This document shows positions 1 to 61,275 of a stretch of 64,000 nt of DNA, piece after piece (positions within the stretch are counted from its first letter, which is position 1; every line of letters starts with the position of its first letter). The position numbers and the translations under genes are program-made. This DNA comes from Macrostomum lignano (Eukaryota), in NCBI GenBank assembly GCA_002269645.1, contig NIVC01002654.1, positions 88,711 through 152,710 on the forward strand, written 5' to 3'. The notes beneath the pieces are model-generated. The model searched no databases. It was given only the letters and a program-made list of their open reading frames with translations, and was not told the DNA's origin.

Positions 1-230
1 AACGTAGACATCTTTCTGGCCCATGCCGACCATGACGCCCTGGTGACGAGGCCGGCCAACCACGGTAGGGACGCTGGCCAAGAGGTTGGACCGGTTCGAC
101 ATCACGGCAGCTTTGGTTAGAAGCGAGCCGGAGTCCAACACCAGAGCCGGTTCGTCATTCCAGGAGTCTTCGTCCCGGTCATTGTCATCGTCAGATGATT
201 CAGCAGAAGCTGCTGCCAGGAGAGGCATAT
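1..230 (-). CDS. Actin-domain exon (N-terminal part of an actin fold), truncated by the window edge
   Basis: Translation 228->1: [76 protein letters not shown]. It matches actin ALVVDNGSGMCKA...[20 protein letters not shown]. Acceptor CAG at 233-231. Confidence 0.93.
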
Positions 231-3200
231 CTGCAGATCATATTGTAAGCTCTTACCGGTTATATTTGACATTTGACTCGCTTGACCGGGGAAGGAGACA
301 GCAGACACAACAGAATTGGAGACAGCAGACACAACAGGATTGGAGACGGCAGACACAAGATGATTGGAGACAGCAGACACAATAGGATTGGAGACAGCAG
401 ACACAACAGGATTGAAGACGGCAGACACAATAGGATTGGAGACAGCAGACACAACAGGATTGGAGACAGCAGACACAATAGGATTGGAGACAGCAGACAC
501 AACAACATTAGAGACAGCAGACACAACAACATTAGAGACAGCAGACACAACAAGATTGGAGACAGCAGACACAACAACATTGGAGACAGCAGACACAACA
601 AGATTGGAGACAGCAGACACAACAGGATTGGAGACAGCAGACACAACAGGATTGGAGACAGCAGATACAACAAGATTGGAGACAGCAGACACAACAACAT
701 TGGAGACAGCAGACACAACGGGATTGGACACAGCAGACACAACAACATTGGAGACAGCAGACACAACAACATTGGAGACAGCAGACACAACAGGATTGGA
801 GACAGCAGACAACAGGATTGGAGACAGCAGACACAACAAGATTGGAGACAGCAGACACAACAGGATTGGAGACAGCAGACACAACAGCTTTGGAGACAGC
901 AGACACAATAGGATTGGAGACAGCAGACACAACGGGATTGGAGACAGCAGACACAACAACATTGGAGACAGCAGACACAACAGGATTGGAGACAGCAGAC
1001 ACAACAGGATTGGAGACAGCAGACACAACAAGATTGGAGACAGCAGACACAACAAGATTGGAGACAGCAGACACAACAAGATTGGAGACAGCAGACACAA
1101 CAGGATTGGAGACAGCAGACAACAGATTGGAGACAGCAGACACAACAGGATTGGAGACAGCAGACACAACAGCATTGGAGACGGCAGACACAATAGGAAC
1201 AGGTAGCAGATTTAAGCTCAAAGGTTTCCTTCAAATTTTTCTCACGTTTTATTTTTCGCCGTTTCATTTTTTTAGCAGCCTCGGTTGGTTTGACAGCTTT
1301 TTCGGCCTCTGGTGAAGGGCCACGTCCGCCGCGTAGACGCATCACCAGGTGAACGGTGCAGCCCGGCGTCAGCCCTGCACTGGCAACAGTCCAGTCTGAT
1401 TCCAGCTGCTTTCCGTCAGCAACTAAACGAATCTGATCCACTGGGATGCGCTGCCGTTCGCTTATTGCCTCCTTGAGCTCAAGAATATTTTGATTGGGCG
1501 TAAGGCTAACTGTGAACTCTTCGCTAGTGAGCGTTCTCACTTTGACGGTGAATTTAGATGGAAGAGCTGCGGAATGAACAGGCTATTTCTGTACAATTTT
1601 TTGTCTAAATAAAAAATCTAACAAGCAATAACATCGAAAAAAAAATCTCAGACTCACATTTAGCATCAGCTTGCCGCATTTGTGCGGCTTTCCGATTCTG
1701 TTTAACAGACAGCACCACCGGGTGCTTGTCGTGAACGCCGGCCAAAAGCAGCGAAGCTTCCAGATCGTCAAACAGCCGAAGAGCTTCTTCGCTCTTTCCG
1801 GTGTTTGACAACTCCTGACCATCAATGATACCGTCGGCAATTTGCGCGAGAATTTCCGCCTAAAAAATTTAGACGAGTCATTATGAGAGTAACTATCCAT
1901 ATTGAGTTCTTTTTAATTCTGCGTCATTATAAAGTTTACTTTACGAGAAGGAAAAATGCCTCGTCAACTCCTTCCTTATAAAGAGGTAAAAAATTGGGAC
2001 AAATGCCTCGTCATCTAACAAACTCACAAGCCCGTCGCCAGCCTCCTTGATCGGTTCCCAGCCCTGTGTGGCTAAGATATCAACCTTCTCGTCGTCTAGC
2101 AAAGTTTGCAATCGGCCAGTCATGTCCGATTCAAATTTTTCGTCCTGTCAGAAATAGATAGCATTTACAATTAGTATATAACAATACCGGTCAGACAAAC
2201 CTTAGAGATTTAGTATATTGTGAAAGTGTGCTACTATATCATAAGGATAACGATTTCATCTACCTTTTCACGATCCTCAACCGCTACGAAGCTGGTAAAT
2301 TGGCAAGCCACTGAGTAGCGAATCGATAATTGAACCAGGTTGGCCTTCTGCTCCAGTCGCTTCAGCTGTAAATTTGATTGGGTTTGCTAATTTGTCACCT
2401 TTGAAATCTCAAATGAGTATACCTATTTTTATAGCTCTCTACCAATACGTTTATTGTGAACCTAATACGAGAATAACTTCAGTGGTGAACGCATCTGACT
2501 TTCGCACCAAAGACCCCAGGTTCGATTATGTGCGCGACCGCACATCACGCCAACAACACAAGAGCCAACCACGGGGGTCAGAACTGCTTGGCTCTTTAAA
2601 TGACTGCATGTCGCCATGAGTTGCGACAGTTTCTCAAGTCAGAACTTCATTTATATTAAATCATCTTTTCTTAGAAACTCTCCGATTTAACTCTACCGAC
2701 TTTTCCGACTTTTTAGTTACCTGATGCAGAGCCGGATCGGTATCCAAGCTGCCAGCCTCCCAGTCGGCAATGAGGCTCCTAGCAGCCAGGGCGTGCACCA
2801 TGGAGCCGGTGGTAAAGCATAGCTCGCTAGTGAACACCGTGCAGCTGACTCGACAGTCGCCAGCTTTGGCATGCAGTGTCGCTCGTTGACATCCGCGACC
2901 TTCGCGCGGCATCAAGCCATAGACAATCAAGCGCTGACCGTTGAACAGAGCCGACGGACAAGCAGGCGCTTGGCGCACTACAGACAACTCCTGACTGTCA
3001 CTGTTGTCATCATCGTCGTCAAGATGCCACTCAACGCTGAGCTCGGTAAGCGCCGGCGCGGTGAGCCGAGCAATCAGCTCGTCGGCCAATGCAGACCATT
3101 TTGAACGTCTGGCCGGGTCGAAAAATTCCACGGAACCGCCGGAACCGGCAGCTCCGGCCAGCGATCGGAGCCGGTGCCGGTCTGGCGAGGGTCCAACCGA

Positions 3201-6200
3201 GCAGGCCAGCAAACGCAGGTGCTTGTTAGCACCTGAAGCGGCGACAGCCAGTGTAGCCTCTTTCGCTTCGTAGTGTCCGTCAGAAATCAGCAGCACCGCG
3301 TGCGGTCCGAATTCGCGCAGTTGAGCCAGGTAAGCCAGGTAATTAGAAAGATTTGTGCCACCCATATTGGGTTTTGAGGCTCGGATGAATTCTAGACAGC
3401 GATTCTGGACGCTTTTCCTGGAAAATTTATAACTCGTGAAGTCAGCAAATGGAATTTTTGCAGTTTAAAAGACACCAAGAACGAAAATTTAAATGCACCT
3501 TTTTAATAGATGCAGTGAACACTATATTAACGAAAAATGGTCCTTTTAGAAAAAATGCTATATGCTATTTAAAAATGGTACGCTTGAATGTTAAACTCGG
3601 AGTTTACAACATTTGACCGCCGACCCAATAGCCCAGACCCTAATCTGAATTGTCGGCAGTCAGGATTGTCTTTTTACCACATATTTAAAGAAATCTAGTT
3701 ACTTTATAGCGCAAATTTAAAATGAATTTTATCAGATATCAAGAGTCTTTACTGTTTACTCTTTATGTACTCTTTAACGTATTGTACTTCCTGCTTTCAA
3801 AGCAAACAGAGATCGGTCTTAATGATTGTGGGAAGTATAGTTTCAAATGTCGGTTTTTCGTTTACAAAATACAAGGTCAAAACACAATATTTTTAGATTT
3901 ATCAAAGAAAGTTGCTTCCAAGACAGAAACTATAGTGTAAAAAAGGAGTGAAAGAGGGGGGGGGCGTAGCCCAGTGGTCTAACGCAGCGGTCTGATGTGT
4001 CAGCGGCCCATGCTCGAGTTCAAGTGCAGTCACATTTATTTTAGGGCTCAATTGAAATCTCGGCTTGGCTCTGCTCGTGCAATTAACGCCCTTGAGGCCC
4101 AACCCCCGAAGCACAGTGAACTTACATGCCTAACGATAAATAAAGATAATTCTCACCTGCCGACCGGCTGTGGCAGCGCAAAGCAATCCTCGAACTGCGA
4201 TCCGAACCGAGCCACGTTGACTCGAGTCCGCGCCGGCAGATGCCGCAACAGCAGCGCCGCCAGCCGCCTGGCGTCCACGCTTGGCTCGCCAGCCATTGAG
4301 CGGCTGCAATCTAACGCCAGGGTGACAACTCCGGAGCAATCCGAGGACGCTGACGATTCGAACTCTGGGTAGAAGCACACCATCAGAGCGTCGGGACCGC
4401 TGGATTGCAGCGAGTCGTCGGGCCGTTCGACCCACAGTCGGGGCGCGTTTATCTCGGCTAGGGACACCTCGAGGCGGAAGCCAAGCTCGCCGAGAGTCTG
4501 CTGTTGGCCCGGTGCCAGGCGAACAACCGAACAGGTCTCCGTGCGCTTCACCTGTTTGCAGCATTCAGAAACTCACAGTTCTAGTTGCGCTAGAGCTCAG
4601 TTATTTAAACTTATACTAGTAGCATTCATATTGATTTTTAGTTACTTTTTCCAACACCTCTACCAACTAACGACAACAAAAATGAATCTCCCTGTCCCCC
4701 ACTCTCTCCCTATCCCTCCCCCACTCTCTCCCTATCCTTCCCCCACTCTCTCCCTATCCTTCCCCCACTCTCTCCCTATCCCCCCCCACTCTCTCCCTAT
4801 CCCTCCCCCACTCTCTCCCTATCCCTCCCCACTCTCTCCCTATCCTTCCCCCACTCTCTCCCTATCCCTCCCCCACTCTCTCCCTATCCTTCCCCCACTC
4901 TCTCCCTATCCCTCCCCACTCTCTCCCTATCCTTCCTCCACTCTCTCACCATCCCTCCCCACTCTCTCCCTATCCTTCCCCACTCTCTCCCTATCCCTCT
5001 CCCACTCTCTCCCTATCCCTCTCCCACTCTCTCCCTATCCCTCTCCCACTCTCTCCCTATCCCTCCCCACTCTCTCCCTATCCCTCTCTCTCCCTATCCC
5101 TCTCCCACTCTCATCCCTCTCCCACTCTCTCCCTATCCCTCCCCACTCTCATCCCCTCTCTCTCCCTATCCTTATCTACTCTCATCCCTCTCCTCCCTAT
5201 TTTCAGCACTCTCACCCCTCTCTTCTCCTATCCCTCCCCCACAATCATCCCTTTCTCCCTGTCCATCACCCTCTCACCCCTCTAACTCCGCATCCATCAC
5301 CCTCTCACCCGCCCTGTGCTTCTCGCTCTTTTTTGCTAACAACTTTTTGCGCAGATTTGTAAAAAGCACCTGAAAAGTTTAAAATTTAAACCTGAATCTC
5401 ATGCGTTGGTGATATTAATCCCCTGATAGGATATGGCATCCTCAGACCGGCCTCCAGACTGAAAGCTCCAACTGGTCGTCTCACGGCGGCCGTGTCTGTC
5501 ACCTGCTGCAGGCTGTCATCAGCCGCTGAGGCCGTCTGCCAGGGCGCCGCGCTGCCGGGCAAGCCGAAGATCACCGCCTCGCCGCTTGGCTTCAACTCGC
5601 AGACGTAGCGAATTTTAATCAAAGCCGCCGTCCTTGCCGGCAGGTTGCCAATGGAAACGGTGAACACGTCGGGACTTTCGGCGGCCTGCTCCATCAGGTA
5701 GGCGCCTTTGCCGGCTGACACGGCTTCGCGATACTCGCGCCTGGCTTTCTCCTTCTCCTTGACAACTCCGACTACTCGTTTGGCGCCGATGTAGGCTTCG
5801 AAACCGCACACCGCGGCGCCTTCGCTCAGGGGAAACACGTAGCGAGCCTCCACAGGTGAGCTGCCAGTGTTGAAGAACTCTTGGAGCAGGACCACCTGGG
5901 CGGTTGCAGAGAGAGGGAGGGGTGCAGGGGTCCGCAAACTCCGGCCCGCAAAGCCTCTCTATCCGGCCCTCGGTTCTTTGAAACTTCACAATAGCAATCC
6001 AACCCGATCAAGGTTTGAGTCTCTTCTCAGGTCTCTCTCTCCCCCCTCTTCTACCTTTTCTCTTCTCTCCGCTCCGCTTCTCTCTACTCATCTCCCTTCT
6101 CTTCTCGTTCGTCTTCCCTCTCCTTGTTCCCTTCAATTCTATCATATCATCTGACCTGCAGTAATGATCAAAACTCTTCATCTGGCGATTAGAAACTGAG

Positions 6201-7125
6201 GGCCGATGTACACCTGTGTGAGCCTGCGTACAGTATCCGCAGGAGTCAGGGGCGATGGCTGCAGGCCAGTGTCACCGATTGCGTTGGATAATTGTTTATT
6301 ATTCCTCAATGTTGCCACAACCTTTTCTACACTTATTATCCAACTGTCAAAACTGTGGCTAAAATATTTTTTATTCTTACCTGAGCCACCAAGTCCACCA
6401 GGTTGGCGCGCACGTGCACCGAACGCAACGGCATTGGAGGTCCGCCCGAGTCGCTTAGCAACCCAAACTTTTGATCCGCAATTCGAATATTCAACTCCAG
6501 ATCGGTCAAATCCTCCACCTCGTCGTCTGATTCTTCATCATCAGGGATGCTGCACTGTTCCATCGTTGCCAGATTATCCATAGGCCGATCGCCGTCCAAA
6601 TAGAACTCCACAATGTACTCGAGCTTCTGCTGGGCCGAATCAAACACTGCGAACTCGCGATCGCTGAAGCCATTGTCATCATCAGCGTTGTTGGCTCCCG
6701 TCGAGATTGGAATCGACTCGACGCTCTGACAGTCAGCGGAGGTTGGTGAGCAGGCGGCGGCAGGCAGCGGCTGAGACACCCGCTGCACCCGGCCCAGGGC
6801 GACCGAGCACACCAGAGCCACGCGGCAGCCCAGGCCGGAGCCGTCGGCGCGGGGAGGCTCCGAATATTTGGCGGCCACCTCGATGTTGTCGGCGAAGTAG
6901 ATCCCGCGGCCGAGCTTGCCTGCGTGTCGGCGGTGCAGCAGCTGCTGGCCGGCTGGCAGGCGAGGCGGCAGGAGGCCTCTGCGAGGGGTTATCATTCAGG
7001 ATTTTAGGGACTCAAGACGGAGTTTGGTAGAGAGCTAAAAGCGCTGTACAAGAGCGCTAAGATAGACAGACAGACACACAGACACACAGACAGACACACA
7101 CAGACAAACAGACAGACAGACACAC

Positions 7126-7214
<89 letters not shown>

Positions 7215-7235
7215 TAGACAGACAGACAGACAGAC

Positions 7236-7332
<97 letters not shown>

Positions 7333-7343
7333 CTAAGACACTA

Positions 7344-7384
<41 letters not shown>

Positions 7385-7395
7385 CTAAGACACTA

Positions 7396-7436
<41 letters not shown>

Positions 7437-7511
7437 CTCTGACAGACAGACAGACACACAGACAGACAGACACACACACAGACAGACAGACAGACAGGCA
7501 GACAGACAGGC

Positions 7512-7579
<68 letters not shown>

Positions 7580-10500
7580 TGACTGACAGACAGAATCCCA
7601 ACACTGTTGTGAATGCAGGGGAGCGCTTCAAACTATCTATTACTACAAGCAGTACCGCCAGGCGCCATCTCACCTAGACAAAATGCCCACCAGATTCCTG
7701 CCAGACGAGCCATGAAACAGCAGCCGCACGTTTCCCAAATCTCGTCGAAAAACGGCGGCCTCTTCGCGTCGACCGACGGAGAAAATCCGGCGAACATTGG
7801 CGCCGGAGCCGATGCTGGATTCGTCGATTAATCGACGAACGACGGCCTCCTCGTCTGGGTCGGCCCGCTGGACAAATGCTTTGAGTGCGCGGCGCTTCAC
7901 CGAGGCTGGGGGTGACGGGCGCCAATTCGAGGCCTCCGTCACAGATAGAAGGTCGCGCATCAGCTGGGAGAAAGTCGATTGATTGATCGGGGATTCACTC
8001 ATTAGTTGATTGGTTGAATGACTGACTGTCTGACTGATTGAATGTTGATTGATTGATTGATTGATTGATTGACTGATTGAATGTTGATTGATTGATTGAT
8101 TGATTGACTGATTGAATGTTGATTGATTGATTGATGGATTGACTGATTGAATGTTGATTGATTGATTGATTGATTGACTGATTGAATGTTGATTGATTGA
8201 TTGATGGATTGACTGATTGAATGTTGATTGATTGATTGATGGATTGACTGATTGAATGTTGATTGATTGATTGATTGACTAACTTATTGAATGTTGATTG
8301 ACTGATTGACTGTTTGAATGTTGATTGATTGATGGATTGATTGACTTATTGTTGATTGTTTGACTGATTACTTGATTGACTGATTGATATTAACGGTTTG
8401 ATTGATTGATTGATTGATTGGTTTATTTCTTGATTAACAGGTGCCAGTATTATTATGTAGCCATTAGCGAATATACATGTAGAAGGGATATGTATTGGTT
8501 TAAAAGTGATAAAAACCAAAGGCTAGAAGACTGGTTTTTACCATTTTTATTGTTTTTTTCTTTACTTTGCATTAGACACTTGAATACTACAATTCTAACT
8601 CTTTATAGATGCCATAAAATCATAAAAGCTCGATGCTTCATACTAAATAATAAGTAAGTAGCTTATTATATTCTTTTCTTACAGCAGGGCACCTAAATGC
8701 ACAAATCAGAGTGATTAGTGTACATAGTTTAGGTGCACAGAGTATCCTTTTAATAAAAATACAAATCAATTAAACTGATATACAATTATTCTTAGGCGAT
8801 CATACTGCACTACTGTCAGTAAGCGAATATGGAAATAGATAATAAAATCGCCTACCAAGCAGACATCTGCGGCCAATCCGAATTTATAAGCCGAGTCCAG
8901 GCACCCGCCGCCACCGCTGCCGCATTTCAAAGCCGATTGAAACTGCTGGCAGAGCGAGTGCGAGTGATAATCCGGCTTGCCTGCGCTCTGCTGCTGGTAC
9001 TGCATCAGGACGCCTTCGGCTAGGTCCACCTGTCGGGTGTGTTGCAGTTTTATTCGCCACATATAACTTTTTTATACTTATAAGCCACTCTCTTCAGCAC
9101 TCGACTAAAGCGTGCAACCCTCTCCAAGTATTTAACTAAAGCGTGCAACCCTCTCCAAGTATTTAACTAAAGCGTGCAACCCTCTCCAACACTTAATTAA
9201 AGCGTGCAACCCTCTGCAGTACTTGGTCTAATGCACGCAAGCGTACTAAGCCCACACAAATAATGTACAGATTTATTTAAAAAGTACACAAAAAACTTTG
9301 CTTACATCGTCAATGGTGCAGCTCCGGCTCTGCATCAGGTGGCCCAGCCAACCCTTGCCACCCGCGCCTATGCTTTGAGAGGCTTGGCCCAGGAATTCCA
9401 GAGCCTCCTGCCAGCAGGCCTCAACGAACTGGTCTTCGCCGGAGTTCAACAGGCTGGGAGCAACTTGAGTCAGCGCCTGCGAGTGTTGGCCGGTATGGGA
9501 TCGGGTATTGTGAGGAGTTTTTGCCTCACTGATGTCTCACTGCTCTCTCCACACACTGGCATCTGTCCGCATTTCACACACTACATGCTGCAGTCTTCCC
9601 ACATGCTGCAGTCTCCCCACCCGTTGCAGTCTTCCCACCCGTTGCAGTCTTCCCACACGCTGAGGTCTCCCCACACGCTGAGGTCTCCCTACACGCTGCA
9701 GTCTCCCCACCGGTTGCAGTCTTCCCACACGCTGCAGTCTTCCCACACGCTGCAGTCTCCCCACCCGTTGCAGTCTTCCCACACGCTGAGGTCTCCCCAC
9801 ACACTGAGATCTCCCAACACACTGCAGTCTCCCCACACACTGAGGTCTCCCCACACGCTGACGTCTCCCCACACGCTGCAGTCTCCCCACCCGTTGCAGT
9901 CTTCCCACCCGCTGCAGTCTTCCCACACGCTGCAGTCTCCCCACACGCTGAGGTCTCCCCACACACTGAGATCTCCAAACACACTGAGATCTCCCAACAC
10001 ACTGAGATCTCCCAACACACTGCAGTCTCCCCACACGCTGAGGTCTCCCCACCTGTTGCAGTCTCCCCACACGCTGGAGTCTGTCTACATGCTGCAGTCT
10101 TCATACAGAAGTCCCACCGCACCACATCGTGGGTTCCCACGCCCAAGCCCCATCCCATACGCTAACTAACCTCTCTAAGCTGGTTCGAGCAGGATCGGAA
10201 CAGCGAAACTGGCAGGTCTCGGACGCGACTCAGCGGACACCATTTAGTCGAAGCAGGAGCTGAAGTCGTCGGCCCCAGACTGCCGCCGCTACCGTACGAA
10301 TCGGACAGATGAGCCAGCACATTCAGCGCGTTGGGAGCGTCCGGTATCACCCGCATGGACACGGGAACAAAGACCTGCGAGATATGATAATAATCAAAAT
10401 AGTAACTATAATAGTAATTAATTAGGATGCAGTACAGCAAAAGTACAAATGTACTTCAAGCTTAATGTTCGAACTAAAATACACGTGCGCCCTAAATTAT

Positions 10501-12764
10501 TCTAAGTACATTTAGCTTAAAAGTACAAACGCACATAGAAAGTGCATGTGTACTTTTAGAAAAATTAATAACTAAAAGAACCAATCGATACCTACCTCGC
10601 TTCCCTTGCTAGCATAGACAATGTACTGATTCTGTCCATCTATTTCGCCCGTGTACAGCTCCAACAGGCTGTAAGTCGCATTCTGAAATAATGAAATTCA
10701 ATTCATAAATATAATTGTAGTTCACAGAGCAAGGTAGAGCTTCTAACAAATCTCTGCTGACCTTGACAAAAATGGCGAACCGCAGCAGCTCGAATCGATC
10801 TGTTGGCGGTGATATCTTACTCGCCTCCGGAAAGTTGCTAACGTTTTGAACTCGAAATGACGGCGTGTCCGATTTCTCGGGCACTGATAGAATATTAAAA
10901 TAGGCTTCCATTGCGAAATTTGAAAAAAGTGTTTAGAAAAAGACACGGCAAGTTTCCTTTATTTTAACTGTATCCAAAAATTGATCCCTAAGTGCCGTTT
11001 TTATAAACGTGTGTCCAAGAGGGCCGTTCTATGAAAGTGTCACCAAAGGGGCCGTTTTATAGAAGTGTCCCCAAAAGGAACGTTTATAATATTGTCGCCA
11101 AGGGGAAGTTTTTAATTTAAAAAATCAACTCCGATAAGGAACCTCTGAAGCCTAAATGATATGAATCATTCAGTATTACATTTGAAATCTCAAATCAAAA
11201 ATAGTCTATAACCAAAAGACGAGTTCTCCCTAGACAAAATTGCTTCTGGTGACTCACCCCTAACGGCTCCTTTCTCAAACAGTTCGCTGGCCGATTTTCC
11301 AGCCGCCAGGAATTCGTCAGTTCCAATCGGACGACCAGCGGCTAAGCAGGCGTCGAGAAATCCGATTCGAACCACGGGCTTGCCAAGGCTGAGCGCCTGT
11401 CGAACTTTTGAGCACTGCAGGTCGACACCGTCGGATACCAGTAGGTAGTCAATCTGGTGAGTAGAAGGCAGGGAAAATCTGTTCAGCACTTTGATTCCCA
11501 ACCCTGCCAGCCAATCAGCGCACTGTCTTGTGTACACTGGCTGAGCCTTATCTAATATTAGCCAGCCAATCAGCGCACTGCTTGGTGTACACTGTCTGAA
11601 CCTTATCTAATATCAGCCAGCCAATCAGTGCACTGCTTGGTGTACACTGGCTGAGCCTTATCTAATATCAGCCAGCCAATCAGCGCACGGCTTGGTGTAC
11701 ACTGGCTGAGACTTATCTAATCTCAGCCAGCCAATGAGTGCACTGCCTGGTGTACACTGGCTGAGCCTTATCTAATCTCAGCCAGCCAATGAGTGCACTG
11801 CCTGGTGTACACTGGCTGAGCCTTATCTAATCTCAGCCAGCCAATGAGTGCACTGCTTGGTGTACACTGGCTGAGCCTTATCTGATCTCAGCCAGCCAAT
11901 CAGCGCACTGCCTAGTTTACACTGTCTGAAACATTCCATATTATAATACCACAGCGAATTACCTTCCTAGTGACAATGCAGGACACAATGCCGCCATTGG
12001 TCATGATTAATCGTCGATAATTCTGCTTGTCTTTGGGCCGAACGCCGCTGTCCAACAATAGCGCGAATTGAAGGCTATTCAGTGGACCAGACGCTTGCAA
12101 AGGTGGAGCCTGAGCAGTTGAAGCAGTAGCCTCACCTGAGACTGAGCTGGGCACGCCAATATTCTTGAGTGTTGGGAACAAGATTAAGAGGCTAATAGTT
12201 AATTTGAGCATTCTCATTGGATAGATATCCAAATAAAGGTAACTGAAAATAATTCTCTCACCAGCGATAGAGGAAGAGGCTTTGCAGCAGAACTAATGCT
12301 TGGCTTGGTCAGCGAGTGCAACTTTGCTGTTGATGGAAGCAGAGATGGCAATGCATATATACTAGGAAATTTTAAATTTCATAATAAACCAGACTATTCT
12401 AAAGAGAGATTTAGGGCCCAACAGTTTGGGATATTTTTAGCCAATCCTACAAAACAGCCAATGCTTTAGTGTTGCGTGGTTGCAAAATTGTAAGTAATAT
12501 TAATAATATCTTACTTGACTGCATTTGTGGCTGGCATTTTGACAAGGCAGACATAACTAGCTTTGTTGAGTTGTTGTCAGCGCCAATCACTGGCTTTGGT
12601 TTTGAAGCATCCTTTCTAATTGAAGACACCTGCAGCTCTGTGGCCTGATTAGACTTAAAAGTGTCATGGCTTTGGGTTGTTGTAGGAGCCAGAAATTGGA
12701 AAACTGGATGCAATTCAGGCATGGTTGTGGAATAACATTTGCATGCAAATATTTTGGACACTTG
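1..12764 (-). CDS. PARP4: Vault PARP (PARP4-like) multi-exon gene with fused C-terminal ubiquitin-like and actin domains; 3' end runs off the window
   Basis: Predicted exons (minus strand, GT-AG, phases compatible): 12764-12515 (uncertain), 12135-11963, 11453-11258 (BRCT), 10883-10762, 10374-10171, 9476-9306, 9029-8856, 7963-7674, 6978-6381 (catalytic LLFHGS...GRGIYFAD...DREFAVF), 5895-5392 (VIT: EARYVFPL...FEAYIG), 4551-4157 and 3417-2721 (vWA: [20 protein letters not shown]), 2365-2264 ([10 protein letters not shown]), 2144-2028, 1859-1658, 1566-1246 (Ubl), 230-1 (actin). Motifs follow human PARP4 in order. The N-terminus and the last two junctions are the least certain parts. Confidence 0.9.
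295..1198. repeat. 24-bp intronic minisatellite (GGATTGGAGACAGCAGACACAACA)n
   Basis: Direct tandem units visible; produces spurious ETADTTGL / RHNRIGDS ORFs. Confidence 0.95.
1246..1566 (-). CDS. Ubiquitin-like domain exon (Ubl 1552-1325) plus basic linker
   Basis: [76 protein letters not shown] aligns without gaps to 76-aa ubiquitin, 30/76 identical by hand count. Acceptor ttccgCAG at 1569-1567; donor GTGAGA at 1245. Confidence 0.92.
3956..4145 (+). mobile_element. SINE family B copy (tRNA-like head, 3' truncated)
   Basis: GGGGCGTAGCCCAGTGGTCTAACGC head with an A-box-like motif. Body CAAGTGCAGTCACATT...GCAATTAACGCCCTTGAG is shared with 18700-19030 and 38381-38741. Confidence 0.75.
4690..5170. 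repeat. ~21-bp pyrimidine-rich minisatellite (CCCCACTCTCTCCCTATCCCT)n
   Basis: Direct tandem units inside a PARP4 intron. Confidence 0.95.
7061..7590. repeat. (GACA)n microsatellite
   Basis: Visible tetranucleotide run. Confidence 0.97.
7990..8420. repeat. (GATT)n-derived microsatellite with a higher-order unit
   Basis: Recurring GATTGATT...GACTGATTGAATGTT. Confidence 0.95.
9098..9215. repeat. 30-bp tandem repeat (ACTAAAGCGTGCAACCCTCTCCAAGTATTT), about 4 copies
   Basis: Visible direct units. Confidence 0.85.
9575..10090. repeat. 18-bp minisatellite (CACGCTGCAGTCTCCCCA)n
   Basis: Visible direct units in a PARP4 intron. Confidence 0.95.
11506..11915. repeat. 55-bp minisatellite (GCCAGCCAATCAGCGCACTG...GTGTACACTGGCTGAGCCTTATCTAATCTCA)n
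   Basis: Unit starts at 11506 and 11561 give a 55-bp period; lies between the two BRCT exons. Confidence 0.93.
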
Positions 12765-14957
12765 CTATGAGCTTATAATATTATAGGCCAACTAATTATA
12801 TTTGTTAATTATTAATGCTATTAAGTTACTTAGTTGCATGGGGGTTGCAGCTTGGCATACTTGGCTTAAAGCAAAATTGTTACATAGCTAGCAAGGAATT
12901 CCAAATTAGTCCTCTACTTGTTCTTCTATATTGGTATTATATTCAGATTATTTCAAATATACTCAACATTTATTATCAACAACATTGAAAGTCATTGTAA
13001 AAATTATTCAACATACACAGTTATTATAAGTTATATAGATAATCCAGCCAAAAAAATATATTATTTATGTTTTTTTGATTTTACCTAACTTTTCACTTAA
13101 GTCATATTGTCTAAAATGCAAGGCATTATTTAAAAGTGAGGTAGTTATTTAATTCCTAATTATTTTTATTTCTCTTGGATAAAGCACCCATTAATAAATG
13201 ATTAAGAATTCTTTACAGCAATTTTTTACTATTGACAACATATAATATATTTGAATGATTGATCATTCTTCTATTATTGTTTGATTATATTTAAAAATAG
13301 TTTAATAATATGGGTAAATAATAATTCATAAAATTGGGAGACATTTTTTTAAGTTAAAAATAATGATTTAATAGCCTATGGCAATGACTCAATAAGAAAG
13401 TTGCAAGTGTATAAGAATATAATAAGATCCCTTAAACAAAGTTTGTCCCAAAAAACTATATAGTTGTGATTATATTACTCTAGTAGGTAAAAACAATTTA
13501 AAAACTTGAATATTGAAAAAAAATCGTCTATGGGTGCTGATTTGCAGAAAATGTAGCAATATTAATAGGCCTATAACGTACTTGCGAACAATGTCATTAT
13601 GTCAATAAAGATACTTAAATAAAACAGTGAAGCAACAAGGCATTTAAAGATACTAAACTTAAAAAAATGAATTAGGAAGAACCATAGGATCTAGAGTGGA
13701 CTAAAAATAAGTTGTAATAACGCGAAAGCAGTTCTTTGCATTAAGGAAGAAGTAAGAACCGAGGAAAGGAACCAATCCTGGTTAGAAAAAAGGATTATGA
13801 AATCATGCCCTCAATAACAATAGCAGCCAATGTATACACTTTTTGCTTCCTAACTAAAATTAAAGTTTTTTTTAAACGAATATTGCATATATTTTTCGCC
13901 CGTAACCTGTTATTTCCAGAGAGAAACTGGTATATCTACACAAGTGACTAATCAAAACGCAATCTGAAACTTATAGATCCTCGCCGGGATATCCTGGAAA
14001 TTGGACATTTCAAATTTTAGATGAAATATTTTTATACCAATGTAGTAAAAACTTGGCGCACTTTTAAATTTCATATACTTTTTTGTTCAGGCTAAAGTAT
14101 TTGTTTTCAATAAGAAAAAATAACTTTTAAAAATGTTTTTTATTTGTTGAGATGGTGAGTTCTCTTTTTTAAAAAGCATTCTTTGTTCCCGGAAATAGAA
14201 TTCGTCGGTCGGTCCAAGGCGCAAGTTAGTTAGCAACATATGTGTTCTGGTGTTAGACATGTCACCTTTTTAGTAGTCGTAGTTAATTTAGCAGCATATG
14301 AGTAATATATCACTTAGTAAATCGCTTTTTTTAAGTGGCTAGAGTTTTTTATTATTGTTAAAAAATCATGCGTCACCTCACATGTCATAATTGATTTCTA
14401 TTCTATAAATAACCATGCCTAACAATCCTAACATGCATGCTTCGCATGTTCAGTTTTTGGAAATAGGCCATAGGTCTAGCCTACTTCAGTAATAATAGTG
14501 TTATTTATAATTAGTAAAAATGTATAGAAAATTCCTAAATACAATGTCAATGTGGTTTGGTGTATTCATACATATTTGTAAGCTAATTTAGGCCTACCAA
14601 ATTAATTTACTAAAGAAATAAGTATTTATTGAACATTGCAAGAATTATAGGGATTTAGGATTCTAGGAATTTAAGAATAAACTATCTACTTTGCTTAGGC
14701 CCTAAATCTAATGTTGCTAAGAGTAAAGTATACACTGCAAAAATGCCAAATAGGGGCCTTAATTTAAAAAAATATTGATATCTAAAAACAACAAATAAAT
14801 GAATTAGACCTAATTCTAAGCAAATCAATATTGATAAATACTACCTAATTTTTATATCCTAATAAAATACTTCACTAAAACCTACCAACATATGCTAGGA
14901 GCATATATTGATATATGCTCTATTCTTTGCTCTATTTGACGCATTTATAGACCTATA

Positions 14958-15675
14958 NNNNNNNNNNNNNNNNNNNNNNNNNNNNNNNNNNNNNNNNNNN
15001 NNNNNNNNNNNNNNNNNNNNNNNNNNNNNNNNNNNNNNNNNNNNNNNNNNNNNNNNNNNNNNNNNNNNNNNNNNNNNNNNNNNNNNNNNNNNNNNNNNNN
15101 NNNNNNNNNNNNNNNNNNNNNNNNNNNNNNNNNNNNNNNNNNNNNNNNNNNNNNNNNNNNNNNNNNNNNNNNNNNNNNNNNNNNNNNNNNNNNNNNNNNN
15201 NNNNNNNNNNNNNNNNNNNNNNNNNNNNNNNNNNNNNNNNNNNNNNNNNNNNNNNNNNNNNNNNNNNNNNNNNNNNNNNNNNNNNNNNNNNNNNNNNNNN
15301 NNNNNNNNNNNNNNNNNNNNNNNNNNNNNNNNNNNNNNNNNNNNNNNNNNNNNNNNNNNNNNNNNNNNNNNNNNNNNNNNNNNNNNNNNNNNNNNNNNNN
15401 NNNNNNNNNNNNNNNNNNNNNNNNNNNNNNNNNNNNNNNNNNNNNNNNNNNNNNNNNNNNNNNNNNNNNNNNNNNNNNNNNNNNNNNNNNNNNNNNNNNN
15501 NNNNNNNNNNNNNNNNNNNNNNNNNNNNNNNNNNNNNNNNNNNNNNNNNNNNNNNNNNNNNNNNNNNNNNNNNNNNNNNNNNNNNNNNNNNNNNNNNNNN
15601 NNNNNNNNNNNNNNNNNNNNNNNNNNNNNNNNNNNNNNNNNNNNNNNNNNNNNNNNNNNNNNNNNNNNNNNNNNN
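14958..15675. other. Assembly gap (718 N)
   Basis: Run of n. Confidence 1.
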
Positions 15676-18068
15676 TTGAATTCATCTCTCCAGTTTCTGC
15701 GTAGAATCAGAGTTGTTTGACCGGCCTTCAATGGCTTCAGCCGCTAGCCCAGCTTCAATTGAATTCATCTCTCCAGTTTCTGCGTAGAATCAGAGTTGTT
15801 TGACCGGCCTTCAATGCTTCAGCCGCTAGCCCAGCTTCAATTGAATTCATCTCTCCAGTTTCTGCGTAGAATCAGAGTTGTTTGACCGGCCTTCAATGGC
15901 TTCAGCCGCTAGCCCAGCTTCAATTGAATTCATCTCTCCAGTTTCTGCGTAGAATCAGAGTTGTTTGACCGGCCTTCAATGGCTTCAGCCGCTAGCCCAG
16001 CTTCAATTGAATTCATCTCTCCAGTTTCTGCGTAGAATCAGAGTTGTTTGACCGGCCTTCAATGGCTTCAGCCGCTAGCCCAGCTTCAATTGAATTCATC
16101 TCTCCAGTTTCTGCGTAGAATCAGAGTTGTTTGACCGGCCTTCAATGGCTTCAGCCGCTAGCCCAGCTTCAATTGAATTCATCTCTCCAGTTTCTGCGTA
16201 GAATCAGAGTTGTTTGACCGGCCTTCAATGGCTTCAGCCGCTAGCCCAGCTTCAATTGAATTCATCTCTCCAGTTTCTGCGTAGAATCAGAGTTGTTTGA
16301 CCGGCCTTCAATGGCTTCAGCCGCTAGCCCAGCTTCAATTGAATTCATCTCTCCAGTTTCTGCGTAGAATCAGAGTTGTTTGACCGGCCTTCAATGGCTT
16401 CAGCCGCTAGCCCAGCTTCAATTGAATTCATCTCTCCAGTTTCTGCGTAGAATCAGAGTTGTTTGACCGGCCTTCAATGGCTTCAGCCGCTAGCCCAGCT
16501 TCAATTGAATTCATCTCTCCAGTTTCTGCGTCGAATCAGAGTTGTTTGACCGGCCTTCAATGGCTTCAGCCGCTAGCCCAGCTTCAATTGAATTCATCTC
16601 TCCAGTTTCTGCGTAGAATCAGAGTTGTTTGACCGGCCTTCAATGGCTTCAGCCGCTAGCCCAGCTTCAATTGAATTCATCTCTCCAGTTTCTGCGTAGA
16701 ATCAGAGTTGTTTGACCGGCCTTCAATGGCTTCAGCCGCTAGCCCAGCTTCAATTGAATTCATCTCTCCAGTTTCTGCGTAGAATCAGAGTTGTTTGACC
16801 GGCCTTCAATGGCTTCAGCCGCTAGCCCAGCTTCAATTGAATTCATCTCTCCAGTTTCTGCGTCGAATCAGAGTTGTTTGACCGGCCTTCAATGGCTTCA
16901 GCCGCTAGCCCAGCTTCAATTGAATTCATCTCTCCAGTTTCTGCGTAGAATCAGAGTTGTTTGACCGGCCTTCAATGGCTTCAGCCGCTAGCCCAGCTTC
17001 AATTGAATTCATCTCTCCAGTTTCTGCGTAGAATCAGAGTTGTTTGACCGGCCTTCAATGGCTTCAGCCGCTAGCCCAGCTTCAATTGAATTCATCTCTC
17101 CAGTTTCTGCGTAGAATCAGAGTTGTTTGACCGGCCTTCAATGGCTTCAGCCGCTAGCCCAGCTTCAATTGAATTCATCTCTCCAGTTTCTGCGTAGAAT
17201 CAGAGTTGTTTGACCGGCCTTCAATGGCTTCAGCCGCTAGCCCAGCTTCAATTGAATTCATCTCTCCAGTTTCTGCGTAGAATCAGAGTTGTTTGACCGG
17301 CCTTCAATGGCTTCAGCCGCTAGCCCAGCTTCAATTGAATTCATCTCTCCAGTTTCTGCGTAGAATCAGAGTTGTTTGACCGGCCTTCAATGGCTTCAGC
17401 CGCTAGCCCAGCTTCAATTGAATTCATCTCTCCAGTTTCTGCGTAGAATCAGAGTTGTTTGACCGGCCTTCAATGGCTTCAGCCGCTAGCCCAGCTTCAA
17501 TTGAATTCATCTCTCCAGTTTCTGCGTAGAATCAGAGTTGTTTGACCGGCCTTCAATGGCTTCAGCCGCTAGCCCAGCTTCAATTGAATTCATCTCTCCA
17601 GTTTCTGCGTCGAATCAGAGTTGTTTGACCGGCCTTCAATGGCTTCAGCCGCTAGCCCAGCTTCAATTGAATTCATCTCTCCAGTTTCTGCGTAGAATCA
17701 GAGTTGTTTGACCGGCCTTCAATGGCTTCAGCCGCTAGCCCAGCTTCAATTGAATTCATCTCTCCAGTTTCTGCGTAGAATCAGAGTTGTTTGACCGGCC
17801 TTCAATGGCTTCAGCCGCTAGCCCAGCTTCAATTGAATTCATCTCTCCAGTTTCTGCGTCGAATCAGAGTTGTTTGACCGGCCTTCAATGGCTTCAGCCG
17901 CTAGCCCAGCTTCAATTGAATTCATCTCTCCAGTTTCTGCGTAGAATCAGAGTTGTTTGACCGGCCTTCAATGGCTTCAGCCGCTAGCCCAGCTTCAATT
18001 GAATTCATCTCTCCAGTTTCTGCGTAGAATCAGAGTTGTTTGACCGGCCTTCAATGGCTTCAGCCGCT
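15676..18068. repeat. 83-bp highly homogeneous satellite, about 29 copies
   Basis: Unit GAATTCATCTCTCCAGTTTCTGCGTAGAATCAGAGTTGTTTGACCGGCCTTCAATGGCTTCAGCCGCTAGCCCAGCTTCAATT. It abuts the gap. Confidence 0.98.
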
Positions 18069-18699: not shown

Positions 18700-19030
18700 A
18701 CAGGAGGGCAGCGACCCAGGCTGGATTTCAAGTGCAGTCACATTAATTTGGGACTAGACTGGAATCTCGGCTTACCTCTGCTCCTGCAATTAACGCCCTT
18801 GAGTCCCAACCCCCAAGGTACAGGGAAGTGTACATGGCTAACGATAATTAAAGTTAGAGCCGCTGTACACTCCTGTGTGAGTGTGTGCCTTACCTGTGCG
18901 TATGACTGCGTACGTATCCGCGCGCTTGTGTGCCTGCTCAGACGAGTCTGTGGAATGGGTAGCAATGCCTCTTGCCGATTGTGTGACCATGTCGCTTAAA
19001 GTGCGCCAGGTCGTACACAGTCCCCTGCTT
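18700..19030 (+). mobile_element. SINE family B copy
   Basis: Shares its body with 3956-4145 and 38381-38741. Confidence 0.8.
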
Positions 19031-21297
19031 GCATAGGGTTGCATAGGTCTGGCGAACAATCCGAGTCTTCGGATAATTCAATAGTGTTTAGTTTTTGCTC
19101 TTCAAGTATAGGTTATAGCCCGTACACTACTTTTACAGCACAAAATTTCGCTAACGAAAATGACTCACAACTACAAAGATGGGACTGTGAATTGCAGGAA
19201 GTGTCTCCTGCTGGCATCTTGTTGAACAGGCTCTCCACTTTCTACGAAATCTAATAGTCCGGGTAAGACTGGCTCTGGGTGCCGTCTACAAGGCCGTAAT
19301 TTGCATGTCTGCACTTCCACGGAAGCGCCGCATCGCCGACACTGCAGCAATATTTAGTTCGATCTCTCCTCTCGCGGTCTTTCGTCACTGCGTCTAGGGC
19401 ATTGCATTCGCCATTAGGCTTTTGACATATGATAGAAAATTTAATATGTTCAGCCCGTGCGATGATGGAGAAAAAATGTAGAATCGCACATTTGGATGCT
19501 GGATTGGGGTGAGAGAATTTGTCGGTTAGGAATAATTCGACACAGCTTCTATGCGACACTACGGTGCTTGTGGCGCGTTTGCCTTAGTGCCTATGCTGAT
19601 GCGAACTGGCGGCTCAGCACGGTCGGCAAATTCGATTTAGTGCTGTCGCCAATTTTGTAGCTGTCCTCTTCTCGCCCATTTTTTGCTCAGCTGTGGTCTT
19701 GCCATCTCGACGCTCGTCGGTTTTTTTGGTCTTCGGTCATTCCAAAGCAGACGAGCGCTTCTGCAAGCTTCTATTGTTAGCCTGACGGAATCAAATGTTG
19801 CCGTCTTTATCCGAGGTGCCTGTTGGTAGACAGCGGTGTCTGGCGGGTTTTAATGCGCCTGTCCATCCGAAAATGAATATTGCATGACAGTGTTTCAGCA
19901 GCTGAAAATCTGCTTTTAGATTGACCCTGCCAACACTGGCATGGGTCTGGCCTTGCGCCGCATCGATTTATCGGGAATCAAACGCTTCCCTAATCTCTCT
20001 TATTTATTTCTCCCTCCCGTTGCTGCCGGCCACACTTAGCTGACTCTACCCTGCTTTCTCTGTTTTTCTCATCCCTGCCAACCCTCTCTCAGTTCTATAG
20101 GCTTCTCTATCTTTTTCTATTCTCGCCTGCTACCACTCGGCGCTTTCCAACGCCTGGAGGGCCTCGCGTTTGAAATGATAAATCAGTTGGATGCGGGGTC
20201 TCTATCCCTCTCTATTCCCGTTCCCATCTATCCCTGCCTGCGAGCTGTTTGTCTCTATGGCTCCCCAGCTCAGATAGCCGTTCCACCCCCCTCTCCTAGC
20301 CATCCGATATCCCACAACAGCACACCCCGTCCCCAATCTTGGCCCTGGCTACTGCAAGCCTCTATAGTCTGCTTTCTTTCACTCTCTTCCCCCTATCAAC
20401 CATTTCTTTGGTTTCCTCTCTCAGCTGCTCTGCTGCAGATGCATAGATCTGCTGGCGCATATGCTAGGTTGCTAGTGATGAAACCTAACGCATGTCTGTG
20501 ACAGCCAACATAGTAAAAGGGGGTAGTGATCACTTCGTAGCTTCGTAAGGCTTTAAAGCTTTGTAGACATTTGCTAGACAACACAGTGCGACTCAGTATA
20601 ACTGACTATAGATATGATCTGAAGCCATCAGAATTCGTTTTGCTGAAGATCTGCTTAGCGCATAGGCACTAGACATACTGACATTATTGTAAGTGCAATG
20701 CCAAATGTACTAAGTGTTAAGCTTATCATTCCCAAGTTCCTGCTAAAGTTTGCTCTTGAAACAGATAAGGCTGATAATGGACTCGTGCAGTCTCTATATA
20801 ATAATACTAAATAAGTAGTATTTATGCTTACTCTTTTCTTACGGTATGCGGCCCCTGGGCGCTCCATTCAGATTATATTTCGCGAGCATCTCCTCGTGGG
20901 ACATTGCGGTGTGCCGCCATTCGTCTCGCTTTCTACTTTTCGTCCCGTTTGCCTCCCTTCTAGCTACCGGCTGGCCTCTTGTTTGCCGCTTGAAAAATGA
21001 ATTTTCTTCTGCCCTCGCTGCATTATACACGAACCATGTATGTATCTCGCGTTCCTTTGGGATTGCCGCCGTCTCTAGTCTTATTTCAATATTTCCTTTT
21101 GACTCGGTGCTCTTGTCTTTTTTATTTTTGTATTTCATTTTATTCCCTTTTCCCGTCCGCAATCCCCAGTGGCGGCTGCCGTGATTTTATGCTAATAATG
21201 TCAGGACTGAATGCTACGGGCCATGCGATCTGATCTATGTTCCCTATCTCCGATAATAATCTGACTTTGCCCCCCGTTTTTCACTACAAACTTGCAG

Positions 21298-30166: not shown

Positions 30167-31294
30167 ATGCTAGCTCAAATCGCGCACTTCGCCATCCAGC
30201 GCACTAGCAGACAGACTAGACAGGCAATGGCTCAGACTCAAATTTCTAAGTTCTTTAAAACAATGCCAAAAGATGGCGAGAAATCTTCCTCGTCCAAGCA
30301 GGACGCTGACCAAACTTCGACGCCCGATCAAGAAAGAAAGGATGAAAAAGTTGAGTCAAGGTCCAATTGGCTACAGAATCAGCAGGAAAGCCGCAAGTCC
30401 ATGGATAAGCGACCTTTGAGCGCCGACAAAGACGAGGACAAAGACTGCTCCGGGGAGATGAAAAATTCCGAGCCGAAGCGTCCCTGCCTATCAACTGAGA
30501 CACCGCCGCGGCCGCAGCAGAATCTTAACGCGTTTCTGGCTTCGCCGTCCAGCTTCGGAAAGGAGAACCAGAGCCAGTTTCTGAGCGCCCAGCCAGCCGC
30601 TGTTCAGTCGCTGATGGTTGACTTCGGTATCAGCTGGATGCAGGCCCTGAAGCCTGAGCTCACTAAGACTTACTTTGTCCAGCTAGCTGAATTTGTTCGG
30701 GCCGAGCGCTCCAGCAAGACAATCTACCCTCCGCCTGGGGAGGTCTTCTCCTGGACTCGCGCCTGCCGCCTGCAGGAGGTGAAGGTGGTCATCCTGGGCC
30801 AGGACCCCTATCACGGCCCTAACCAGGCCCACGGGCTCTGCTTCTCGGTCCGCCGGCCGACCGTGCCGCCTCCCAGCCTGCTCAACATTTACAAAGAGGT
30901 GTCGAACAATTTTCCGGACAAGTTTCAGCATCCAGGACATGGCGATCTGACTGGCTGGGCTGAGCAAGGTGTGCTACTGCTCAACGCTGTGCTCACTGTT
31001 CGCCGCGGTGAGGCGAATTCGCATCAGGGCCGCGGCTGGGAGACGTTCACTGACGCCGTGGTCGCTACGCTCAACTCTCGCTCCGCAGGCCTAGTATTCA
31101 TACTGTGGGGCAACTATGCCCAGAAAAAGGGCGCCAAAATTGATAAGCGCAAGCACAAGGTCATTTGCGGCGCTCATCCGTCGCCTCTGGCCGTTAATCG
31201 GGGCGGCTTCTTTGGCAAAATGTACTTTAAGGAAGCCAACGACTATTTGAAGTCGGTTGGAAAATCGACCATCGATTGGTGCCACTTGCCTTGA
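30167..31294 (+). CDS. UNG: Uracil-DNA glycosylase (family 1), intronless
   Basis: GQDPYH, AHGLCFS, GVLLLN, HPSPL catalytic motifs; PIP-box QTQISKFF at the second Met (30227); AATAAA at 31391. Confidence 0.97.
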   Translation: MLAQIAHFAIQRTSRQTRQAMAQTQISKFFKTMPKDGEKSSSSKQDADQTSTPDQERKDEKVESRSNWLQNQQESRKSMDKRPLSADKDEDKDCSGEMKNSEPKRPCLSTETPPRPQQNLNAFLASPSSFGKENQSQFLSAQPAAVQSLMVDFGISWMQALKPELTKTYFVQLAEFVRAERSSKTIYPPPGEVFSWTRACRLQEVKVVILGQDPYHGPNQAHGLCFSVRRPTVPPPSLLNIYKEVSNNFPDKFQHPGHGDLTGWAEQGVLLLNAVLTVRRGEANSHQGRGWETFTDAVVATLNSRSAGLVFILWGNYAQKKGAKIDKRKHKVICGAHPSPLAVNRGGFFGKMYFKEANDYLKSVGKSTIDWCHLP

Positions 31295-61214: not shown

Positions 61215-61275
61215 CTGGAGAGGTGAGAGCGAGGCGAGCGGTTTGAGTGAGGGGAGAGGGTAGGCAAAGGGAATG

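Follow-up and report, generated by a model that had tools for sequence, protein, structure and literature searches.

In a 64,000-nucleotide stretch of the flatworm Macrostomum lignano genome (GenBank assembly GCA_002269645.1, contig NIVC01002654.1, positions 88,711 to 152,710 of the forward strand; hereafter the window, numbered from its first letter), an earlier note had drawn attention to an internal ubiquitin-like (Ubl) domain with an intact C-terminal cleavage and conjugation tail at 1246-1566. Our analysis leaves little doubt that this segment, with the anatomy described below, is an intact but unannotated cassette exon of a gene resembling PARP4 (vault PARP). We assign a probability of about 0.45 to the reading that the exon is an alternatively used ubiquitin-mimic cassette whose RLRGG|Arg junction would be a plausible target for proteases directed at the diglycine (GG), with a cut removing the tail of the protein. 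Whatever the mechanism, the current M. lignano annotation overlooks a well-preserved coding exon, so that the gene model is corrected and a domain architecture new for PARP4 comes to light.

The ubiquitin-like exon and its host gene

The interval 1246-1566 is precisely one exon on the minus strand. The features of the gene that bear on it, given in the direction of transcription, are as follows.

11963-12082 and 11232-11414, minus strand: BRCT-like N-terminal exons, located by tblastn of residues 18-132 of the snail protein P0007; absent from the partial model P0005
7667-7972 and 6372-6980, minus strand: PARP catalytic exons (Pfam PF00644, E=1.6e-11 and 3.3e-7), separated by an (AGAC)n-rich intron
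5389-5901, minus strand: VIT exon (Pfam PF08487, E=1.4e-32)
4156-4551 and about 2673-3419, minus strand: vWA exons (Pfam VWA_3 for each exon, singly below the curated cut-off; P0005 mapping)
2264-2365 (LKRLEQ...) and 2028-2144 (DEKFES...), minus strand: two post-vWA exons (P0005 mapping)
1658-1859, minus strand: upstream helical exon AEILAQ...RQADAK, present in P0005 and ending in phase 1 at AAAT|GTGAGT (last base 1658)
1567-1657, minus strand: well-formed 91-nt intron between the helical and Ubl exons, GTGAGT...CCGCAG, GC 0.31
1246-1566, minus strand: Ubl cassette exon, 321 nt and 107 stop-free codons, defined by splice sites and translation; codes for (S)LPSK, the 76-residue Ubl and the 26-residue linker that follows the GG
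1325-1552, minus strand: 76-residue ubiquitin-fold core FTVKV...HLVMRLRGG (alignment, Pfam, PDB search, AlphaFold2 and Foldseek)
1325-1339, minus strand: R72-L73-R74-G75-G76 codons, the ubiquitin-type C-terminal tail (translation)
1322-1324, minus strand: Arg codon immediately after the GG, so that the junction reads ...HLVMRLRGG|RGPS (translation)
1247-1324, minus strand: post-GG linker of 26 residues, with the basic cluster KKMKRRKIK at 1247-1273
231-1245, minus strand: intron that follows the Ubl exon, GTGAGA...CTGCAG, with a 24-bp minisatellite at 294-1198
1-230, minus strand: next exon, which runs off the window; linker plus actin N-terminus/D-loop fragment, 76 residues visible, with an alternative acceptor at 212

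The translated domain aligned with ubiquitin without gaps at 30 of 76 identical positions (39%). The residue-level claims of the earlier note held in full: L8, K27, R42, V44 (in place of I44), K48, H68, V70, R72, R74, G75 and G76 are kept, the remaining lysines are replaced (K6R, K11E, K29A, K33R and K63P), and the GG is followed by Arg rather than Pro and then by the basic stretch. The tail L/M71-R72-L73-R74-G75-G76 is retained entire while 61% of the domain has diverged. Pfam, PDB and fold matches agree on a gapless 76-residue ubiquitin-like domain ending in RLRGG, and the match is far beyond chance: PF00240 was hit at E=6.2e-19 with 68 bits (cut-off 25.4) over profile positions 1-72 of 72, and tblastn of ubiquitin against the window gave E=8e-15, the sole ubiquitin-like match in the 64 kb. 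In the PDB search, ubiquitin scored E=1.8e-12, with NEDD8 and ISG15 about equal, which points to a generic Ubl of ubiquitin/NEDD8 type and not to any one modifier family.

The domain is predicted to adopt the beta-grasp ubiquitin fold. A single-sequence AlphaFold2 model produced a beta-grasp core with the topology b-b-a-b-b-b and a predicted local confidence score (pLDDT) of 78-89, and Foldseek returned ubiquitin as the top match to this model, with a target TM-score of 0.95 and a root-mean-square deviation of 1.0 A over 76 columns. From about the RLRGG onward pLDDT fell to about 51-55, with no secondary structure, and the post-GG linker is accordingly predicted to be disordered and hence accessible. 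The basic cluster within it might conceivably act as a nuclear localization signal.

The exon is bounded by the acceptor CATTCCGCAG|CT, with its first base at 1566, and the donor AAAAC|GTGAGA, with its last base at 1246. The GTGAG of this donor and the CAG of the acceptor fit the motifs described as typical for M. lignano (donor GT[G/A]AG, acceptor CAG; PMC8629364). GC content is 0.51 in the exon, compared to 0.31 in the upstream and 0.36 in the downstream intron. Both ends are in phase 1, so that either inclusion or skipping leaves the reading frame intact. The next exon can be entered at acceptor 230 (CTGCAG|AT ATG) or at 212 (CCTGGCAG|CA), and with the cassette included the predicted junctions read ...KIK-H-MPLL and ...KIK-P-ASAE, respectively.

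The annotated protein of the locus, P0005, is 100% identical to the window exons by tblastn mapping and jumps from 1659 to 228, thus omitting the cassette. The same Ubl-skipping splice is found in P0354, and the paralogue P0006 also skips the Ubl and uses acceptor 212, yielding ...ADAK-S-ATAESS. A word-indexed search with the spliced Ubl-to-actin junction returned a single match, a partial M. lignano model that spans the actin-like part, and the best database match of the downstream exon is a Macrostomum lignano protein with 97% identity. Inclusion of the Ubl exon in some transcripts is nonetheless probable, judging from its splice signals and coding frame, and the resulting PARP-Ubl-tail protein is, so far, a splice-compatible prediction. 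The earlier note had envisaged the Ubl as internal to a PARP-Ubl-actin protein. The PARP gene is indeed present; an expressed fusion of that kind is not confirmed, the annotated models leaving out the exon and the downstream piece not being an actin domain.

The identity of the host gene as PARP4-like, with BRCT-like, PARP, VIT and vWA domains and a helical segment, is read from its deduced products. By Pfam, the PARP domain lies mid-protein and is followed by VIT and vWA on successive minus-strand exons, as in PARP4, and this order agrees with the vPARP clade architecture described in PMC2964712, here with a Ubl added. P0005, P0354 and P0006 are all PARP4-like, with metazoan 'PARP4-like' proteins as their best homologues (E about 1e-119). 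The BRCT-like exons align weakly with the N-terminus of snail P0007 (E=0.002 and 0.005), and Pfam was silent on the open reading frame (ORF) at 11193-11606 that covers one of them. Conservation of the post-vWA segment extends to PARP4-like proteins from molluscs, echinoderms and cnidarians. PF26156 and PF26166, the C-terminal families of vertebrate PARP4, are not listed for P0005 or P0006 in their database annotation.

By eye, we also noted that the helical exon at 1658-1859 resembles the TPR-like helical C-terminal segment of the coral PARP4-like proteins P0013 and P0015; if so, the conserved core would reach as far as the point of Ubl insertion.

Tail modules in flatworm, snail and oyster

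The tail that follows the Ubl exon belongs to the PARP4-like gene, as the annotated models connect it with the core and an oyster PARP4-like protein has the same actin fragment. Beyond the end of the window we read the tail from P0005. Its actin-like part comprises about 55 residues corresponding to actin residues 3-59 and matches Pfam PF00022 over profile positions 4-53 of 410 at E=0.27 (E=0.043 in the M. lignano paralogue P0001). Identity to actin residues 3-59 is 33 of 57; here the human actin reference string, like those used for VAMP2 and RPLP2, was entered by hand, the Pfam and PDB searches being the tool-based equivalents. The idea of an actin-like half set free as an actin-like protein, put forward in the earlier note, could not be sustained: in place of a complete actin fold there is only this fragment of about 55 residues in an acidic tail. 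The D-loop stretch, a conserved 21-mer, is nearly unchanged in flatworm and oyster, while the residues before it have drifted, which suggests that selection may act on the D-loop mimic itself; candidate partners would be actin's own cleft or enzymes directed at the D-loop. The actin fragment is followed by about 200 acidic, low-complexity, disordered residues containing EEDDFDEYGRSLFEE and EEDDEDFGTSLFDE, two motifs similar to the C-terminus of the ribosomal P-stalk (reference EESDDDMGFGLFD). Matches of this P-stalk-like type are short and not significant alone (E about 1).

The partial paralogue model P0001 (UniRef A0A1I8FKX2) bears the name 'Ubiquitin-like domain-containing protein', yet no Ubl is detected there by Pfam. 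Beyond its actin fragment it looks like the P0005 tail read in a shifted frame, and P0001 may thus be a decayed copy or a faulty gene model.

Among relatives, the full-length PARP4-like protein P0007 of the snail Batillaria is collinear with the window in module order. Its segments map, on the window, as follows.

12082-11232: BRCT-like
7972-6372: PARP
5901-5389: VIT
4554-2673: vWA
2380-2246: post-vWA segment
1540-1328: Ubl

After its Ubl the snail tail continues in the order Ubl-RLRAEEESDEEMGFCLFDSDDD, with the P-stalk-like motif EESDEEMGFCLFD. The sole PDB hit of this stretch is the extreme C-terminus of the ribosomal stalk protein P1, EESDDDMGFSLFD, in exact register and at E about 1. The tail of the PARP4-like protein P0014 from the oyster Saccostrea contains an actin fragment (Pfam E=6.7e-9; PDB actins E about 1e-18, residues 4-62), a fragment of the synaptobrevin SNARE motif (Pfam E=5.5e-10, profile positions 9-47 of 89) and the motif EESEEEDVDMAFALFDDDD. 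At its locus (L001, Saccostrea cucullata) the synaptobrevin fragment stands directly before the actin fragment on its own 57-residue exon, at about 16007-16715, and the P-stalk-like motif EESEEEDVDMAFALFD lies at 19213-19251. P0014 has no Ubl, and a scan of L001 revealed none hidden in the locus; when L001 and the loci of a land snail and a scallop (L002 and L003) were scanned for hidden Ubl, actin, VAMP and P-stalk exons, only the oyster's already-modelled modules emerged. These land-snail and scallop loci showed none of the tail modules, so that the distribution of modules is patchy or the annotation incomplete.

Wider searches brought up no further PARP4-Ubl protein. An exhaustive phmmer search of the exon against 1.84 billion representatives yielded 11,944 hits, the best 150 of which were all polyubiquitin-type repeats with at most about 43% identity and included no close relative; likewise, in a word-indexed search with the flatworm and snail sequences aligned, polyubiquitins dominated. 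By Pfam and PDB searches the ubiquitin, actin and synaptobrevin fragments of these tails are significant and the P-stalk-like motifs suggestive. On the basis of these matches, the spiralian PARP4-like tail appears to be assembled, in varying fashion, from exon-sized copies of parts of ubiquitin, actin and synaptobrevin, and probably of the P-stalk as well.

The 24-bp minisatellite in the intron after the Ubl exon consists of 37.9 copies with 92% matches. It is open in all three minus-strand frames (CCVCCLQS, VVSAVSNP and LLCLLSPI) and thus gives the semblance of a long ORF, and the unspliced Ubl frame therefore continues as far as a stop at 260-262; within the array, a single short unit changes the frame. 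We also considered a coding minisatellite (VVSAVSNP) that would enter the actin-like exon via a 27-nt intron, and rejected it because the frame would have to shift within the array, the intron would be implausibly short and the Ubl frame would need one more splice.

Possible cleavage of the cassette and alternative explanations

If the cassette is included, the Ubl exon would supply an isoform-specific ubiquitin-mimic module situated between the enzyme core (BRCT-like, PARP, VIT, vWA and helical segment) and the disordered acidic tail. The RLRGG|R junction, standing before a flexible linker, could then be a substrate of GG-directed proteases, whether of host deubiquitinase type or encoded by pathogens, and a cut would leave a PARP4 core ending in Ubl-GG. 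N-terminal Arg is a primary destabilizing residue of the Arg/N-degron pathway, and since the cut would expose an N-terminal Arg on the released tail, the tail would more likely be destroyed than persist as a stable product. In sum, the tail would be removed conditionally, and the retained hydrophobic patch could recruit ubiquitin-binding proteins in either the cut or the uncut form.

Several observations are in line with this proposal. The Ubl carries the C-terminal L-R-G-G of a modifier with a residue other than Pro next, and ubiquitin-X fusions are cleaved unless X is Pro. The full-length, gapless Pfam match extends over 107 open codons with canonical splice motifs and symmetric phases, and a collinear Ubl is present in the snail PARP4-like protein. 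Among known Ubls, FUBI, which ends in GG and is very divergent from ubiquitin, is cut from eS30 by USP36 (PMC8354635). That the junction of the flatworm protein is actually cleaved is nonetheless a tentative proposal, with odds somewhat short of even, and it would be improbable that the core-Ubl-GG product is then conjugated to other proteins. Such conjugation of a PARP4 core of well over 1000 residues is conceivable, and we know of no precedent for it. The likelihoods given here for the different readings overlap, as cleavage of a bait is a special case of cleavage and binding is compatible with cutting, and they are not meant to sum to one.

Against the proposal of a cleavable cassette stand, in the first place, the annotation and the databases: all three annotated M. 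lignano models (P0005, P0354 and P0006) skip the exon, with ...RQADAK spliced downstream, and in the word-indexed junction search none of the 5.8 billion database sequences was a protein containing it. Furthermore, the only other PARP4-linked Ubl found, that of P0007, occupies the same place and ends in RLRAE, indicating that the GG is not conserved across phyla and that a Ubl of this family can exist without a cleavable GG. The earlier note had counted a lack of RLRGG conservation in related species, along with absence of cleavage, as refuting the idea, and the former has in part come about, with RLRGG in M. lignano and RLRAE in Batillaria; within the flatworms, word-indexed and exhaustive protein searches provided no closer relative in which to check the GG. 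The snail and flatworm domains share 26 of 76 residues with each other, compared to 36 of 76 (snail) and 30 of 76 (flatworm) with ubiquitin, and as each is nearer to ubiquitin than to the other, they could be independent captures rather than orthologues. Finally, the position of ubiquitin F4 is occupied by Lys, and with 39% identity recognition by general deubiquitinases is uncertain.

The snail sequence would also suit an integral Ubl that is never cleaved and serves as a permanent interaction module, for instance with proteasome receptors, UIM/UBA proteins or vault partners, the RLRGG being an ancestral leftover without a processing role. We regard this as unlikely, though it deserves serious consideration: the snail orthologue keeps its Ubl with RLRAE, the flatworm domain keeps the recognition patch L8/V44/H68/V70, about 1000 residues precede this domain, which sets the protein apart from natural ubiquitin precursors, and many multidomain proteins bear uncleaved Ubls. 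However, integral Ubl domains usually lack the GG, and in this case all five tail residues have survived despite 61% divergence, the residue after the GG is not Pro, and the linker beyond is predicted to be disordered and exposed. The absence of the exon from all annotated models and from the database proteins would suit an unused relic, a ubiquitin-derived exon that formerly belonged to the gene, is no longer spliced into any transcript and has not yet decayed, but the state of the exon makes this improbable. By our estimate, random sequence would keep 107 codons open with a chance of about 0.6%. Pfam matches the domain over its whole length without gaps, the exon has intact splice sites at both ends, and the upstream 91-nt intron is well formed and the GC content exon-like. 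A division into two genes, with a PARP4-Ubl gene ending after the Ubl and the actin-like ORF a separate downstream gene of an operon, is very improbable, and we have largely rejected this model. The actin-like ORF does have its own ATG at 226-228, right after a CAG that fits a spliced-leader trans-splice acceptor; about 30% of M. lignano genes are trans-spliced, operons exist, and CTGCAG|AT ATG fits the acceptor motif [T/C]TNCAG (PMC8629364). Opposed to this, the annotated models join the PARP4 core to the actin-like exon in frame, the same actin fragment recurs within the tail of the oyster PARP4-like protein, and the unspliced Ubl frame remains stop-free until 260, a read-through that would add about 330 residues, roughly 300 of them repeat.

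A broader explanation takes the whole tail into account. The spiralian PARP4 tail could be an exon-shuffled array of baits, or integrated decoys, gathering copies of conserved host proteins that pathogen effectors attack (the ubiquitin RLRGG, the actin D-loop, the synaptobrevin SNARE motif and the P-stalk tail) and thereby sensing or absorbing pathogen proteases and toxins. The RLRGG Ubl would in that case be a bait for pathogen proteases of deubiquitinase or deISGylase type or for ubiquitin-modifying toxins, and cutting or modifying it would alter PARP4 or vault activity. We consider this decidedly unlikely on present evidence, although it draws together several observations. The three spiralian tails bear differing combinations of ubiquitin, actin and synaptobrevin fragments and P-stalk-like ...GFxLFD motifs, and the modules are exon-sized and patchily distributed, which suggests turnover. 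In vertebrate PARP4, positive selection is found only in one disordered, length-variable region after the vWA, which has been read as a pathogen interface (PMC4038475); the C-terminal peptide of the P-stalk is the docking site of ricin-type toxins (PMC5086656); and protease 'tripwire' sensing is established for NLRP1 (PMC7857732). However, the case is one of pattern in three species, exons captured by accident would likewise stem most readily from abundant mRNAs such as those for ubiquitin, actin and ribosomal proteins, and the P-stalk-like matches lack significance individually. Moreover, we know of no immune role of PARP4 in flatworms or molluscs. If true, invertebrates would have in the bait array an equivalent of the fast-evolving disordered region that PARP4 has in vertebrates, and animals an analogue of the integrated decoys of plants.

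What PARP4 and the vault particle do is a long-standing open question, for which the best lead is that the disordered, fast-evolving post-vWA region of vertebrates resembles a pathogen interface (PMC4038475). In flatworm, snail and oyster this same region is built of recognizable pieces of ubiquitin, actin and synaptobrevin, and probably of the ribosomal stalk; one piece is a ubiquitin fold with its cleavage and conjugation tail kept, and the hypotheses raised here are testable in transgenic M. lignano. Among the papers searched, we found none that describes a Ubl, stalk-like motifs or an actin fragment in a PARP4/vPARP. The PARP4-Ubl architecture is already present, undescribed, in one public snail protein, and the Ubl fold itself is ordinary.

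Surroundings of the gene and comparison with known systems

Several other features of the window were recorded in passing. Further introns of the PARP4-like gene are filled with micro- and minisatellites (4695-5283, 7060-7594, 8006-8435 and 9583-10100), of which the types include a 22-bp CT-rich unit, (AGAC)n, (TTGA)n and an 18-bp unit. Dozens of arrays occur across the window, among them an 83-bp unit repeated 29 times (15676-18068), a 57-bp unit repeated 53 times (23511-26541) and a 33-bp unit repeated 58 times (62108-64000), and a run of roughly 740 N, an assembly gap, lies at about 14950-15690 beside the 83-bp array. A repeated element with the tRNA-like start GGGGCGTAGCCCAGTGGTCTAACGC is present at 3905-4129 and 18741-18995 (minus strand), one copy lying in a vWA intron; it looks like a repeat of the short interspersed element type, and ARAGORN detected no tRNA in the 64-kb window.

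Outside the PARP4-like gene, an uninterrupted ORF of 807 residues at 34004-36427 (plus strand) combines N-terminal 37-residue repeats, both acidic/Ser-rich and Lys/Pro/Ala-rich, with RRM-like segments and a C-terminal RGG box, and by eye appears nucleolin-like. Neighbouring ORFs lie at 30167-31294 and 32082-33437 (both plus strand) and at 60848-61471 (minus strand); by eye, one is uracil-DNA glycosylase-like (GQDPYHGPNQAHGLCFSV), one alpha/beta-hydrolase/lipase-like (GHSAGG), and one has a LIM-type Cys pattern.

Compared with known systems, the M. lignano gene shares with PARP4/vault PARP the same core of PARP, VIT and vWA domains (PMC2964712, PMC12280208), preceded by the weakly matching BRCT-like exons, and with vertebrate PARP4 a long, variable region after the vWA (PMC4038475). 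It differs in that the vertebrate C-terminal families PF26156/PF26166 are not listed for the M. lignano proteins, whose tail instead has the optional Ubl exon, the actin fragment and the P-stalk-like motifs. As in the precursors of ubiquitin and related modifiers (polyubiquitin, Ub-eL40, Ub-eS31 and FUBI-eS30; PMC6332867, PMC8354635), a ubiquitin fold ending in RLRGG is followed directly by a polypeptide that does not begin with Pro. In natural ubiquitin precursors, however, the Ubl is N-terminal and always expressed, whereas in M. lignano it follows the BRCT-like, PARP, VIT and vWA domains, about 1000 residues into the protein, on an optional exon; and while cleavage frees the Ubl from natural precursors, cleavage of the M. 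lignano protein would leave it on a large protein.

According to the account of Archibald et al. (2003) in PMC6332867, a fusion of true ubiquitin to complete actin is found only in Bigelowiella and relatives. On that account, the chlorarachniophyte fusion likewise has a ubiquitin-type before an actin-type sequence in one frame; unlike there, in M. lignano the Ubl is 39% identical to ubiquitin, a 26-residue linker and an intron intervene, and actin is represented by about residues 3-59 only. Rad23, ubiquilins, parkin and OASL contain embedded Ubl domains, generally without a C-terminal GG. They resemble the M. lignano protein in having an embedded Ubl with the Ile44-type patch kept, whereas the M. 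lignano domain keeps RLRGG. In the NLRP1 and CARD8 tripwires, a disordered, fast-changing region of a defence-linked protein mimics the cleavage sites of pathogen enzymes (PMC7857732, PMC10249858), and a likeness of the M. lignano tail to these systems is hypothetical. A parallel for a proteolytic switch is offered by the cytopathogenic pestiviruses, in which a ubiquitin insert in the polyprotein creates a site for cellular ubiquitin hydrolase (PMC8310069); there the insert is a recent, near-identical ubiquitin in a viral polyprotein, whereas in M. lignano an old, diverged Ubl resides in a cellular gene.

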